This document shows positions 5,011 to 40,103 of a stretch of 50,137 nt of DNA, one piece after another. Every line of letters starts with the position of its first letter. The stretch's first letter is position 1. Under the pieces are notes generated by a model, which was not told the origin of the DNA, ran no database searches, and saw only the letters and a program-made list of their open reading frames with translations. The position numbers were made by a program, and so were the translations under genes. Source of the DNA: Octopus bimaculoides (taxonomy: Eukaryota); the NCBI RefSeq assembly GCF_001194135.2, contig NC_068994.1, forward strand, positions 34,285,631 through 34,335,767. Direction: 5' to 3'.

Positions 5011-5240
5011 CTTGGGTACTGCAGGTAAAGGCTTTGCATAAGATGTAAAACTATTCCTCATTGGTAAATTCCAGTGCTGTGAAGGGATGTTGGGACTGGC
5101 ACTGGTCACCCGGATTGACTTCAAGTCAATGACGTCATTGGATGTTGGGTTCGGGCAGATATTACCTTCGTTTGAACCCTTTGTGGTCGGATTGGTATGT
5201 TTACCTCGGCTGAGTGTATGTAACTGGGAAGACTTATGCC
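5011..5240 (-). CDS. PCDH: Protocadherin cytoplasmic exon 3 (inferred): (G)HKSSQLHTLSRGKH...HWNLPMRNSFTSYAKPLPAVPK; may instead read through to TAA at 4957
   Basis: Long polypyrimidine tract then attgcag| acceptor. The phase-1 start completes GGG (Gly) with exon 2, and the frame is open. Ends at a possible weak donor AAG|GTACAC. GC-richer unique island between purine microsatellites. Confidence 0.75.
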
Positions 5241-5534
5241 CTGCAATCATAAGAAGAATACACCGACATGAGAAGAGAGTAAAAAACAAAAAGAAAAAAA
5301 GAAAAGGAACCAGAAGAAAATAAGAAGGAGCAGGTGGGAGTAGAAAAAAAGGGGAGAGAAGGGGAGAAGGAGAAGAAGGGTTGCTATATATGCTGATATC
5401 GTTTTTAATTTAATTAAGTTTGAGCCAATCAAGATAATTTGAATACAATAGATAAATGCGCATTCATCAGAGAAATATATGCAGACGTGTGCATATGTGT
5501 ATGTATGTATGTATGTGTGTGTATATATATATAT

Positions 5535-5590
<56 letters not shown>

Positions 5591-5977
5591 GAATAAGTGG
5601 AGCAGAAATATACAAGAGGATGAAAAGTGTCGCTGAAGAGGTCACATATGTGTAACGAAAAATTTTCGGACAATGGATATAAGTTAAAATGAGAAAAGTA
5701 ATAAACGAATGAAGAATGAATATATAGTGCATGTGTTTATTTGGCAGAAAAAAAAATGACAATCCCGAAATATAATATATATATATATATACAGGCACAT
5801 TTATGTGTGNNNNNNNNNNNNNNNNNNNNNNNNNNNNNNNNNNNNNNNNNNNNNNNNNNNNNNNNNNNNNNNNNNNNNNNNNNNNNNNNNNNNNNNNNNN
5901 NNNNNNNNNNNNNNNNNNNNNNNNNNNNNNNNNNNNNNNNNNNNNNNNNNNNNNNNNNNNNNNGTGTGTGTGTGTGT

Positions 5978-6013
<36 letters not shown>

Positions 6014-6017
<4 letters not shown>

Positions 6018-35609: not shown

Positions 35610-36901
35610 TACACATGCACACACATACATATGTAATGAGACACTGCTACAAATAGACGTACGGAGTTCAGTTTAGATTGTTCTTAGTTTTAGTTTTTAG
35701 AAAGTGGAGTACAGGCTTAAGTTGTCTTAAATGAGTGAAGATATTGGGTTTTTAATTAATTACTTATGCATTTGTCTTCCACCCCTAACTTACGTCAACC
35801 AATATCCGGTGTATTGAGTCTTGGGTACAGTACCCAGTCTCTTCTTGTCTGTCTACGTTACCCGGTAGAAATTGAGCAGACAAGAACAGGAGCAGAGAGA
35901 AAGAGGAGAGAGAGAGTGAGAGATTGAGTGAGCGAATGAGTGAGTGAGTGAATGGGTGAGTGAGTGATTGAGTGAGTGAGTGAGTGAGTGAGTGAGTGAG
36001 TGGGTATTGTCTTTCANNNNNNNNNNNNNNNNNNNNNNNNNNNNNNNNNNNNNNNNNNNNNNNNNNNNNNNNNNNNNNNNNNNNNNNNNNNNNNNNNNNN
36101 NNNNNNNNNNNNNNNNNNNNNNNNNNNNNNNNNNNNNNNNNNNNNNNNNNNNNNNNNNNNNNNNNNNNNNNNNNNNNNNNNNNNNNNNNNNNNNNNNNNN
36201 NNNNNNNNNNNNNNNNNNNNNNNNNNNNNNNNNNNNNNNNNNNNNNNNNNNNNNNNNNNNNNNNNNNNNNNNNNNNNNNNNNNNNNNNNNNNNNNNNNNN
36301 NNNNNNNNNNNNNNNNNNNNNNNNNNNNNNNNNNNNNNNNNNNNNNNNNNNNNNNNNNNNNNNNNNNNNNNNNNNNNNNNNNNNNNNNNNNNNNNNNNNN
36401 NNNNNNNNNNNNNNNNNNNNNNNNNNNNNNNNNNNNNNNNNNNNNNNNNNNNNNNNNNNNNNNNNNNNNNNNNNNNNNNNNNNNNNNNNNNNNNNNNNNN
36501 NNNNNNNNNNNNNNNNNNNNNNNNNNNNNNNNNNNNNNNNNNNNNNNNNNNNNNNNNNNNNNNNNNNNNNNNNNNNNNNNNNNNNNNNNNNNNNNNNNNN
36601 NNNNNNNNNNNNNNNNNNNNNNNNNNNNNNNNNNNNNNNNNNNNNNNNNNNNNNNNNNNNNNNNNNNNNNNNNNNNNNNNNNNNNNNNNNNNNNNNNNNN
36701 NNNNNNNNNNNNNNNNNNNNNNNNNNNNNNNNNNNNNNNNNNNNNNNNNNNNNNNNNNNNNNNNNNNNNNNNNNNNNNNNNNNNNNNNNNNNNNNNNNNN
36801 NNNNNNNNNNNNNNNNNNNNATATATATATATATATATATACATATATATATACATTCATATATATACATGTGTGTGTGTGTATATATATCTTATAGTCT
36901 T

Positions 36902-37062
36902 AAAGCTTATAAGCGATCACTGTGCATTGGCTAAGTTAAATAGTCTAATATTGGGGCATATAAGCCCTCGGCGGGAAAAAATGGCAAACCCTACTTTTTC
37001 TGTCGAGGGCTTATACTAGACTATTTGACTTTGTTAATGGAAGGTGATCGCTTATAAGCTTT
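36902..37062. repeat. Foldback palindrome (MITE-like)
   Basis: Perfect 19-bp outer IR, 14/15-bp middle IR and perfect 12-bp inner IR. Confidence 0.85.
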
Positions 37063-37415
37063 CAGCTTATAAAAAAATTATACGCACACACACAGACACA
37101 CACACCGTCATTTTAGAAATAAATATATCATTACCAAACTGAGACAGAAAAAAGAAAAGCACCAAAAATAATAACGGGCTTCGTGGCGAGTTCCAACTAT
37201 TGATTTTGATGAGGTGAATCGAGACAGATTCTTGATTTGATTTGAATCGGTCTGGTAATGACTCATTTATCATTTGCTCTTTACCGTCTCAAATTCGCGC
37301 AAATATCATTTAAAATCTTAGTAATTAATTCAATATATATATATAACATCTAGAGATTGCCATGAGAAAATAACAAGGAAATGTTTACGAAAACGAGCAT
37401 TATGAATCTTTGTTT

Positions 37416-37606
37416 GGGAATAAAGGTTCTCGAAACACATCACATACAGCTATAAACAACTGCATGTAAATAATGGGTAGAAAAATCCTTTTTCGGTAGA
37501 AAAAAGTCGAAGGTTTCGACTTTTCTATCCAAAAACATTTTTCAATTCAACATTTATATGCTATTTATTATAGCTATATGTGATACGCTTCGAGAACCAT
37601 TATCCC
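37416..37606. repeat. Foldback palindrome with ~90-bp arms and 3-nt loop
   Basis: Arms align at roughly 75-80% by manual count, with a central perfect aaaagtcgaa-ggt-ttcgactttt. Confidence 0.85.
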
Positions 37607-37703
37607 CACCTCACGCACACACTAAAAAAAAAAAATTGAATTATTTCGCTTTTTCTCGAAAGTTTATAAATTTCTTATAATAATTATTATCATTATCACT
37701 TAC

Positions 37704-40103
37704 CTGTGCTGCCACCTGCATGGTATTTGGTAATTGTGTTCCTGGAGGAGGTATTTTCCAGCTTTGTCCAGATTTTTTTACTAACTGAGGATCTTGTCGC
37801 AGTAGTGTACTTTGTGAACTTCTGTTATGCTCCTGTTCCGATACAACAGTCACTGGCACATCATATTGTGGCACCACTTGCCCGCAAATATATTCTGACA
37901 GATTATTTTGACTAAATAGTTTAGAACCATCAACTCCGCTAGTGTATTGATTATTTCTGAGATTGTTTCTTCGAACAATACATACAGTTATTGATATGAC
38001 TACTACCAAAGCTACTATTACTGTTGCTACTAACATAATAATCAGTAAATTGATGTGTATTTTATCATCAGACTGTTTGTGAACTGCAGTAAACATCTTT
38101 GATGTTTTGTTGCTTACTGTAAGGGTTAAAGAAAGGGTGCTGGTTGCTGATAAAACTGGTGCACCGCTGTCTTTGACTACAAACTGGAGGTTATACGATC
38201 CTGCATCGTTTTGATAAACTGGACGGGAGAAAGACAAAACTCCCGTGTAAAGGTTCACAGCAAATAATTGTTTGTCATTTCCTCCAAGTATTTCATATTG
38301 GAGGAAAGCATTGACATGACTGTCTCTATCAGAGGCTCTTAGTGCTGTAATGTCATTCTTACCCTGTGGATGATAATGGACATCTAGATTGAAAGGATCC
38401 ACACTGGGAAATGTAAAATATGGTGCGTTGTCGTTTTTATCAATGACTTCAACCACAACATTTGCTGTGTTGTTCAACGAAGGAGTCCCGTTGTCTTTGA
38501 CTAAAACTTTAAATTTATAAACGTCTTGTTGCTCCCTGTCCAGTGACTGAGTGGTGGAGATGAAACCAAAATTAGATATTTCAAATGGAAGAAGATAGCC
38601 TTGGTTGTTCAACAAAGAATATGTCAGTTCACTGCCAGAATCGAGGTCTGGATCTGTGGCATTTATAAAACCAATGGGAAAATTAGGTTCTTCATTTTCG
38701 AAAATTAAAAATTTAAATGTATCCTTGGTAAACTGTGGATGTACGTCATTGACATCCATTACTTGGATGGAAAAATTCTTAGTTGTTCGCAAAGGAGGAG
38801 TCCCGTTGTCTTGGCATGTAATCGTAAAATGTAAAAAATTATCAATTTCTCGATCAATGTGGCTTTTTATGACAATTTTATATTTCATCTTTCCTAGACT
38901 TTGAAGTTGGAGTTTATCGTGCTCGAGTTCACAAGTCACTTCTCCATTCTGACCAATATCATTGTCTGTAACCTTGACATAAGCAATAAAGCTGTTAACT
39001 TTGACTCCTTCAAAAATAGAGGCGACATCATTGGTAGTAAGAGAAATGAAGTTAATATCTATATCAGGAGCATTGTTTTGTTGGTTGATGACATTAACAA
39101 GTACTATAGCTGTTGAACTGAGTGGTGGTATACCCTCGTCACGAGCCTCAATCAACAGCTTGTAACTTTTCTTAGGTTCTGTGAAGAACTTTTGATGTAA
39201 AAAAAGTTCTCCTGATGTTTTATTCAGCTCAAAATAAGATATGTCCAGAGCTGATGACTTGGTGCTGAAATAATACGATATTCGTCCATTTTTCCCGGAA
39301 TCCAAGTCTTTTGCCGACAGTATAACTACAGGTATATATATCAAGTGGCCGTTGTTTACTGTAATGTTATAGATATTCTGGCTAAAAACTGGTCTGTTAT
39401 CATTAATATCAGCGACTGATATAGAAACATCTAATACGCAGGGCAGCCCACCGTCATTGGCAACCACCTGTACATGATAAGAATCTTTAAGCTCTCTATC
39501 TAGTTTCTCTTCCAAAACGATTCCGAGTTCTGTAGAACCATCGTGTTTCCTAGAAACAGACAATGTAAATGGCTCCGACATTTCCTTTCTCAGCCGATAT
39601 TTCAACTGAGAATTCAAAATGCCAACATCTCTGTCAATGGCATTTGGAATAAATTTCGTCGTACCCTTCATATCACTTTCTGTAAATTCCAAATGAAATT
39701 CTTTGCTCTGAAAGTCTGGTCTGTTATCGTTAACATCTTTTATAATAATTTTAATTTCTAAAATCTTCACAAACGATTCCCTATTTCTCACAGCCACTTC
39801 GACCATCCTGAAACATTCAGTGTTGTATTTACAAAGGGACTCAGCATCTAATATCTGAGCAGTATAAAGTTTCCCACTTTTGGAAATATTAAATAACTTT
39901 GAGCTGCTCTCATTTCCTTTCTGGAGCTGTTGAAACCAAAACAAACTGTGATCCTTCAAAGGAACACCATTCACTAAATGTGTGTCGGCAGCAATATCAC
40001 CAATATAACTCCCGGGGTTCTGACCTTCTTCCACATAATATGTTAAATCTATGCATAAAGATGCCTGCAGCAAAAAGAGAAATGCATAGATTTTTATCAG
40101 CAT
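37704..40103 (-). CDS. PCDH: Protocadherin, large first coding exon (signal peptide, EC1-EC6, TM, proximal cytoplasmic tail; 800 codons)
   Basis: Lies within the 852-aa ORF. The real start is probably MLIKIYAFLFLLQASLC (signal peptide, ATG at 40103). EC linkers DVNDN, DINDN, NQQNN, DVNDV and DKNDN; DxD and DRE motifs; C-X5-C in EC1 (CKYNTEC); hydrophobic TM followed by RR. Perfect donor CAG|GTAAGT at 37704/37703 (phase 0), so the ORF's last ~20 codons are intronic. Confidence 0.95.

Follow-up and report, generated by a model that had tools for sequence, protein, structure and literature searches.

Conserved candidate docking motifs in the cytoplasmic tail of an octopus protocadherin

Described protocadherin tails and the octopus locus

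Octopus protocadherins are a textbook neural recognition family, expanded independently of the vertebrate one. The stretch analysed here, a window of 50,137 nucleotides from Octopus bimaculoides (contig NC_068994.1, positions 34,285,631 to 34,335,767), contains the first three exons of an ordinary gene of this family, which has expanded in octopods. The subject of this study is the cytoplasmic tail of the gene product, in which an earlier note had proposed a cassette of three docking motifs (YDVP, YEEL and KPLPAVP) for Src-family kinases and adaptors. Octopus protocadherins have been described as lacking vertebrate-type tail motifs, with octopus-specific motifs only in the cadherin repeats EC1, EC5 and EC6 and the transmembrane segment, together with a PP1 pattern (PMC6339937), and signalling through the intracellular domain has been named an open question in cephalopods (PMC7339444). 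The YDxP, YEEL and KPLP motifs are not in the motif table of Styfhals 2019, which derives from Albertin et al. 2015, whose supplement may list them; the accessible literature yielded no paper that connects octopus protocadherins with SH2 or SH3 domains. The gene is already annotated, since its spliced product of 920 amino acids (aa) is 100% identical to RefSeq XP_052829053.1 (P0004), "protocadherin beta-2 isoform X1" of O. bimaculoides, 927 aa. The gene and its predicted isoforms are thus in RefSeq, and the set of tail motifs would represent an undescribed, lineage-specific docking-motif tail.

The closest described system is the clustered Pcdh-alpha (CNR) of vertebrates, the tail of which has been reported to interact with Fyn (Kohmura 1998, as cited in PMC6339937). 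The vertebrate and the octopus proteins alike are neuronal protocadherins with six cadherin repeats, from families expanded in tandem, with a large exon for the ectodomain and transmembrane segment and small downstream tail exons, and a link to Src-family kinases has been proposed in both, for the octopus from sequence alone. However, the octopus tail has no sequence homology to the vertebrate one, matching neither Pfam Cadherin_tail nor Protocadherin (E<=0.01), and its tail exons are private to each gene, whereas the constant exons of vertebrates are shared. The paralogs P0033 (41.04 Mb) and P0008 (34.60 Mb) on the same chromosome have their own copies of exons 2 and 3, and no second cadherin exon was found in the window or its 10-kb flanks. 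The private tail exons and the lack of Cadherin_tail homology indicate that this is not a vertebrate-type clustered locus. The Fyn contact of vertebrates is not known to map to a pYEEI or RPLPxxP motif. The proposal of the earlier note that octopus protocadherins converged with Pcdh-alpha and Fyn is speculative, the tail being without homology to vertebrate Pcdh tails; since the vertebrate link does not rest on YDxP, YEEL or KPLP motifs, convergence on Src signalling through this putative cassette is a useful and testable hypothesis.

Conservation of the tail and its candidate readers

The 217-aa tail appears to be octopod-specific and fast-evolving except for about seven short islands held constant among paralogs. 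A search with the full protein gave 3373 relatives, of which the best 120 were used; 114 tails were extracted, and 43 long tails were aligned and reduced to 27 sequences with <70% tail identity (median identity to the query 37%). Identity to the query was scored per position across 26 non-redundant octopod paralogs, to which all conservation scores below refer. The mean over the tail was 0.34, against means for the motif-defining residues of 0.77 for YDxP, 0.77 for YEEL and 0.95 for KPLPxxP, so that the motifs are better conserved than the flanking disordered sequence, a comparison on which the earlier proposal could have failed. Among windows of the same shape, KPLPxxP ranks first of 204, YEEL in the top 10 of 207 and YDxP in the top 15 of 207. 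By residue, the scores are Y 0.69, D 0.85, V 0.27 (V39) and P 0.77 for YDVP, followed by a V at 0.58; Y 0.81, E 0.88, E 0.58 (E/T), L 0.81, P 0.62 and G 0.62 for YEELPG; and K 0.96, P 0.92, L 0.96, P 0.96, A 0.65 (A207), V 0.46 (V208), P 0.96 and K 0.77 for KPLPAVPK. The defined positions are kept and the x positions are free, which is the signature expected of short linear motifs.

Among the 114 tails, Y[DE]xP was present in 45, YEE[LIVMP] in 42 and [RK]PLPxxP in 34. The 27 non-redundant long tails carried Y[DE]xP in 17/27, YE[ET]Φ in 19/27 (Φ, hydrophobic), [RK]PLPxxP in 24/27 and all three in 10/27; the stricter YEE[LIVM] was found in 12/27, YE[ET][LIVM] in 19/27 and the general +xΦPxΦP pattern in 25/27. 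When 121 sequences were aligned over the juxtamembrane region, one subfamily was distinguished by YD[VI]P, and another was without the segment. The codons of the kept residues differ among the four genes compared (Leu TTA/CTT/CTC, Pro CCT/CCA/CCG, Lys AAG/AAA), which points to selection at the protein level. Between Octopus and Argonauta, the omega of the tail is 0.09, and the Argonauta ortholog retains the whole tail, with identities of 88% in the exon 1 tail, 75% in exon 2, 81% in exon 3 and 87% in the ectodomain.

The three motifs are only three of about seven conserved islands, so the cassette described in the earlier note is incomplete. The additional islands, all of equal or higher conservation, are R6 and Y10 just past the membrane, S26-E-Y28-x-C30, W72-K73, Q90 at the exon 1 junction, NDVIDLKS (168-175), WNLP (190-193), NSF (196-198) and Y201, and exon 4 also lies outside that cassette. 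Of the six tyrosines in the tail, five score 0.69 or above. The end of exon 3 forms a 21-residue block, WNLPx+NSFTxYxKPLPxΦPK, in which 14/21 positions score at least 0.77; its upstream part includes W 0.92, N 0.85, L 0.92, P 1.0, N 0.92, S 0.85, F 0.96 and Y 0.81. An AlphaFold2 model of the exon 2-4 tail gave a mean predicted local distance difference test score (pLDDT) of 61, a predicted template modelling score (pTM) of 0.17 and no secondary structure, with pLDDT rising to 72-83 over this block alone, and the exon 2-4 tail is thus predicted to be intrinsically disordered. No Pfam domain was found in residues 711-927, and a PDB sequence search with the last 50 residues returned a chance match alone (E=0.75). 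Single-sequence and 23-sequence profile searches, whose word index limits sensitivity, gave no tail homologues beyond Octopus and Argonauta among the named matches, with no squid, cuttlefish or other mollusc tail among them; an exhaustive single-sequence search added 12 representatives, all without names.

The reading to which we give somewhat better than even chances is that the tail serves as a disordered multi-site docking scaffold, its short motifs probably being protein-docking sites. It builds on what the analysis shows of the gene model and its exon phases and of the conservation, disorder and lineage restriction of the tail, while any phosphorylation and the identity of every binding partner named below are inferred. 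The most secure element would be the C-terminal KPLPxΦPK, a putative class I (+xΦPxΦP) ligand of an SH3 domain. A known ligand of this class is RPLPVAP of PI3K p85. All defined positions of KPLPAVP (tail positions 203-209) match the +, Φ, P, Φ, P pattern, which supports the class assigned in the earlier note; they are conserved at 0.92-0.96, with A207 free and V208 being V, I or L. Unlike Src-family ligands of this class, the predicted octopus ligand has Lys in place of Arg and lies within a longer invariant block. The class I consensus is RPLPPLP (PMC11842026).

The second element, YE[ET]LPG at the end of exon 2, would be a tyrosine-based site, read once phosphorylated by an SH2 domain, possibly of the Src-family type for the YEEL and YEEI versions, or alternatively serving unphosphorylated as a YxxΦ sorting signal. 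The Src SH2 domain binds pYEEL nearly as well as pYEEI, with half-maximal inhibitory concentrations of 0.8 uM and 0.5 uM, respectively (PMC2888578), and the earlier designation of YEEL as a ligand sequence of the Src SH2 type agrees with these values. Several paralogs have YEEIP in place of the YEEL of the query, the exact core of the hamster polyoma middle-T ligand EPQpYEEIPIYL. In contrast to that ligand, many octopus paralogs carry YETL, a departure from the Src optimum, and the octopus sequence is also a YxxΦ motif. YETL resembles the half-sites of immunoreceptor tyrosine-based activation motifs.

The juxtamembrane [QK]YDxPV would be a weaker candidate, a pYxxP site of the Crk/Abl/Nck type. 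YDVP is a common site of p130Cas, and the octopus tetrapeptide is identical to this form of the YDxP read by Crk and Nck SH2 domains in the p130Cas substrate domain. However, it is present in a single copy rather than an array, and its Tyr is less conserved than its Asp and Pro. A p130Cas-like array of seven YxxP sites was seen only in the cuttlefish relative P0111 (Acanthosepion pharaonis PCDHD2, ~1030-1155), where four SDY[VL]EP and three [DE]TYSQP lie within ~125 residues, and the O. vulgaris protein P0006 has DTYLEPIYKK as its last residues; such tyrosine-proline motifs may recur among the protocadherin tails of cephalopods. Homologues of Src, Abl, Crk and Nck are expected in the octopus from their pan-metazoan distribution.

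Several observations weigh against this assignment of readers. The phosphotyrosine reading is weakest at YDVP, because its Tyr (0.69) is the least conserved defining residue, replaced in about a third of the long-tail paralogs, with S, H, N or T as the residues seen in its place in many; decapodiform-like sequences, so labelled from their likeness to cuttlefish proteins, lack it and have SW[SP]DVP instead. About half of the paralogs have YETL rather than YEEL, and YEEL fits the YxxΦ sorting motif equally well. At the basic position of KPLP, Lys is near-fixed (0.96) and Arg occurs in one paralog alone. Src-family SH3 domains prefer Arg at this position. Moreover, KPLPxxP is embedded in a 21-residue block far longer than an SH3 domain requires, short motifs of this kind fit many domain classes, and the isoforms X1-X4 stand as RefSeq predictions.

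The tyrosine motifs might instead be trafficking signals, with unphosphorylated YEEL or YETL read as YxxΦ by AP-2 mu2 to control endocytosis or surface delivery, in which case the whole tail would set the amount of protocadherin at the membrane; we consider this possible, though unlikely. YE[ET][LIVM] fits YxxΦ, with the Tyr and the +3 hydrophobic residue both at 0.81, and the motif is kept in short-tailed paralogs without exon 3 (YEEIP near the C-terminus). Control of trafficking by the cytoplasmic domain is known for vertebrate protocadherins. Yet the most conserved residue is Glu +1 (0.88), and Pro-Gly at +4/+5 stands at 0.62, neither of which AP-2 requires, and KPLPxΦPK is left unexplained. 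This conservation argues for a reader more specific than AP-2, without naming it.

Somewhat less probable still is that the last 21 residues of exon 3 form one extended peptide that binds some non-SH3 partner, the PxxP match being incidental. The 14/21 positions at or above 0.77 extend far beyond the 7-residue SH3 core, Lys is found in 96% of paralogs and Arg once, and the AlphaFold2 confidence rises over this block only; but within KPLPxΦP the kept and the free positions fall exactly as in a class I SH3 ligand, and no alternative domain class can be named. One candidate considered was the WIRS motif, Φ-x-[T/S]-F-x-x, which is known from delta2- and alpha-protocadherins (PMC7339444). The octopus NSF[T/S] core resembles its T/S-F centre and is likewise located in a protocadherin tail, but the Φ position is Arg or Lys in 23/27 paralogs and the query has no match. 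The PP1 pattern [RK][VI]xF is also absent from the query, and its C-terminus, -T-E-L-M (-T-E-L-V in Argonauta), has Glu at -2 and is therefore not a class I PDZ ligand but at best a class III pattern.

We regard it as very improbable that the conservation arises from nucleotide-level constraint (splicing enhancers, RNA-editing structures) or from gene conversion among clustered paralogs, although the synonymous sites of the tail exons are themselves unusual. Over exons 2 and 3, O. bimaculoides and O. sinensis agree at 360/360 nt, and in exon 1 the two species differ by 49 synonymous and 4 non-synonymous changes (synonymous divergence, dS, 0.10); about eight synonymous changes would be expected in exons 2-3 against the zero seen (P roughly 5e-4). 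Compared with Argonauta, dS is 0.56-0.58 in exons 2-3 and ~2.0 in exon 1. The introns beside exons 2 and 3 are ~60-86% identical over 400 nt per side and ~70-95% in the nearest 25-nt windows, with a perfectly identical block around exon 2 at window positions 20614-20365. The absence of synonymous change next to a diverged exon 1 and diverged introns indicates extra constraint on the synonymous sites of the tail exons. Local RNA structure was rejected as its cause, the folds of exons 2-3 being unremarkable (z-scores +0.70 and -1.82); candidates are enhancers acting in the splicing of small, alternatively used exons, or a constraint linked to editing. Gene conversion has been proposed for cephalopod protocadherin arrays (PMC9068888). 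As a source of the motif conservation it was rejected by the differing codons of the conserved residues among the four paralogous genes; in addition, the flanks have diverged to ~34% identity, and conversion tracts cannot explain conservation confined to islands of 4-8 residues.

Least credible of all is that the motifs are functionless chance matches in a low-complexity tail: their loose forms are common in shuffled tails (YxxP 43%, YxxΦ 74%, [RK]xxPxxP 17%) and the motifs were picked post hoc in the earlier note, but shuffling the 217-aa tail 200,000 times seldom produced the strict forms (Y[DE]xP 4.1%, YEE[LIVM] 0.18%, [RK]PLPxxP 0.12%), and, as a stronger argument against chance than shuffling, this explanation is contradicted by motif conservation of 0.77-0.95 among paralogs with 34% tail identity.

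Exon phases and predicted isoforms

The positions and exon assignment claimed for YDVP (exon 1), YEEL (exon 2) and KPLPAVP (exon 3) are correct on the minus strand, and the three exons splice in frame, with canonical GT-AG sites and phases that agree. The arrangement of one motif per exon also holds. In three paralogs, exon 2 closes with YE[ET]LP at a phase-1 intron that is conserved; this intron, 1 nt after YE[ET]LP, has an equal position in P0033, P0008 and the orthologs of O. sinensis and Argonauta. In P0033 and P0008, exon 4 is absent and exon 3 runs directly to a stop codon (after KLPYS and KLPYA, respectively).

Neither exon 2, with 130 nt here and 160 and 133 nt in two of the paralogs, nor exon 3, with 230 nt, has a length divisible by three, but their sum of 360 nt is in frame. 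The exon 2-3 module is removable in frame only as a unit, and the motifs are not switchable one by one. RefSeq predicts isoforms X1-X4, and these agree with the expected splice outcomes. Isoform X3 (839 aa; O. bimaculoides and O. sinensis) joins exon 1 to exon 3, which is then out of frame because exon 2 has 130 nt, and reads GISLPSYIH...MTSLT before a stop at 5123-5121; isoform X4 (807 aa, O. sinensis) joins exon 1 to exon 4 (...VAAQDTKTELM). The suggestion of the earlier note that the signalling is switchable by exon inclusion does not hold for single motifs, since skipping exon 2 shifts the frame of exon 3 and the joint skip alone keeps it. In the docking-scaffold model, splicing would therefore act on the module as a whole, removing it (exon 1-exon 4) or ruining it by frameshift (exon 1-exon 3). 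At exon 4, the acceptor is the tandem ttcagTAG/GAC (slash, splice boundary; L001 61483-61515), and use of the upstream CAG places a TAG stop directly after ...AVPK, which would account for predicted isoform X2 (920 aa). Argonauta has a single acceptor at this exon, caacag/GAC, and the C-terminus TELV.

Locus features and biological meaning

The coordinates of the features are collected in the table below. The window is the reverse of GCA_001194135.2 CM046614.1 at 34.26 Mb, and a window coordinate equals 50104 minus the L001 coordinate; L004 and L005 denote the ortholog loci of O. sinensis and Argonauta hians.

Table. Features of the protocadherin gene and related repeats (window positions unless a locus is named)
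Feature	Position	Strand	Remarks
Exon 1, coding part	37704..40103	-	ATG at 40103; donor CAG/gtaagt after 37704, phase 0; 2400 nt, residues 1-800
Transmembrane segment L686-V710	37974..38048	-	Read from sequence; followed by basic stop-transfer RRNNLRNN
QYDVPV juxtamembrane island (exon 1), Tyr747	37851..37868	-	YDVP 37865-37854, codons TAT GAT GTG CCA; conservation in 26 paralogs
Intron 1	20535..37703	-	Gaps (N runs) 23639-23841, 24528-25229, 26085-26948, 29956-30176, 34717-35246, 36017-36820
Exon 2	20405..20534	-	130 nt, phase 0 to 1; 3' end encodes LYEELP and first base of Gly codon
LYEELP island (exon 2), Tyr839	20406..20423	-	YEEL 20420-20409, codons TAT GAG GAA TTA; GT donor 5 nt further on; paralog conservation
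Intron 2	5241..20404	-	Six gaps; no conserved colinear blocks besides exons
Exon 3	5011..5240	-	230 nt, phase 1 to 0, ends AAG/gtacac; splice sites
NDVIDLKS island, tail positions 168-175	5116..5139	-	Per-residue conservation 0.50-0.92, K 0.92
TGA stop met when exon 2 is skipped (predicted isoform X3)	5121..5123	-	Frame-0 exon 3 translation equals C-terminus of P0140 and P0135
Most conserved tail block WNLPMRNSFTSYAKPLPAVPK	5011..5073	-	Holds class I PxxP motif KPLPAVP (5034-5014, codons AAG CCT TTA CCT GCA GTA CCC, then AAG/GT, exon 3); first of 204 windows
~90-nt repeat copies	L005 177-276, 5115-5500, 7420-7506, 12526-12636; L004 8518-8615, 11490-11605, 29373-29462		

The 852-codon open reading frame at 40199-37641 (-) corresponds to the protocadherin ectodomain, transmembrane segment and juxtamembrane region. 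Exon 1 encodes the signal peptide, six cadherin repeats, the transmembrane segment, which is 100% identical in the Argonauta ortholog, and a juxtamembrane tail of 90 aa. Pfam matches in the ectodomain were five Cadherin repeats and an N-terminal Cadherin_2, and their presence with the transmembrane segment in a single large exon identifies the gene as a protocadherin; the catenin-binding domain of classical cadherins had no Pfam match in residues 711-927. Exon 4, encoding DTKTELM and a stop, lies at L001 61492-61515, ~11.4 kb past window position 1 (the left end), and was absent from the window in a six-frame search.

The window has sixteen N runs. Each lies in intron 1 or 2, in the flank upstream of the gene or left of exon 3, and the exons are uninterrupted. 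The O. sinensis locus is gap-free, with the same four exons and identical splice sites, and the Argonauta hians locus has the same four exons with far shorter introns. No hidden conserved exon was found between exons 1 and 3 by blastn of Argonauta against O. sinensis, the colinear blocks being exons 1, 2 and 3 and a ~90-nt dispersed repeat. With the exons uninterrupted and the gap-free orthologs alike, the gaps leave the coding frame and continuity unaffected and hide no conserved coding exon. Microsatellites of the (TA)n, (CA)n or (TATG)n type border nearly every gap (e.g., 5964-6050, 8523-8771, 23119-23638, 41442-41975), translating as YIYIYI or HTHTHT in the list of reading frames, and the gaps are thus probably unresolved simple repeats.

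Further sequence features were observed in the introns and the tail. In intron 2, 6355-6756 and 6767-7168 are identical 402-nt copies flanking the 10-N gap 6757-6766, most likely an assembly artefact in the form of an unmerged overlap. Two reading-frame fragments of this intron, at 7002-7463 (-) and 11775-12401 (-), are probably remnants of transposons or pseudogenes: one carries a C2H2 zinc finger that falls below the Pfam cut-off (E=0.0016-0.01), and the other a CCHC-knuckle-like piece (GHIKKNC) cut by a gap and without a Pfam match. The ~90-nt repeat occurs in several copies, in both orientations and at 73-85% identity, in the flank and introns of Argonauta and the introns of O. sinensis, and looks like a short interspersed element common to octopods. 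In the tail itself, the VIDL of NDVIDLKS is flanked by Asp and Ser, and VIDL-like cores are found in 18/27 paralogs; we take NDVIDLKS to resemble the SUMO-interaction motif of PIAS proteins (VDVIDLT), as a lead only. Upstream of YE[ET]LPG, most paralogs have E.ST.S...DSGxGWSE, lost in the query (SYSGKGLLNRD), and the decapodiform-like P0075 also has DSGRGWSEGE; the DSGxGWSE stretch resembles a DSGxxxS phosphodegron.

The conserved motif map, with Tyr747, Tyr839, Lys913-Pro919, the NDVIDLKS and WNLP/NSF islands and the defined splice variants, offers concrete targets. A broader interpretation, which we put forward tentatively and judge doubtful at present, is that octopod protocadherins independently evolved a tail coupling homophilic recognition to tyrosine-kinase and adaptor signalling through pYDxP, pYE[E/T]L and KPLPxΦP, with splicing producing signalling-competent and signalling-dead isoforms. 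If so, the sources of these isoforms would be the exon 1-exon 4 junction, exon 2 skipping and the CAG/TAG tandem acceptor, and the octopod tail would represent a case of functional convergence with the Pcdh-alpha/Fyn and Pcdh/FAK-Pyk2 links of vertebrates.

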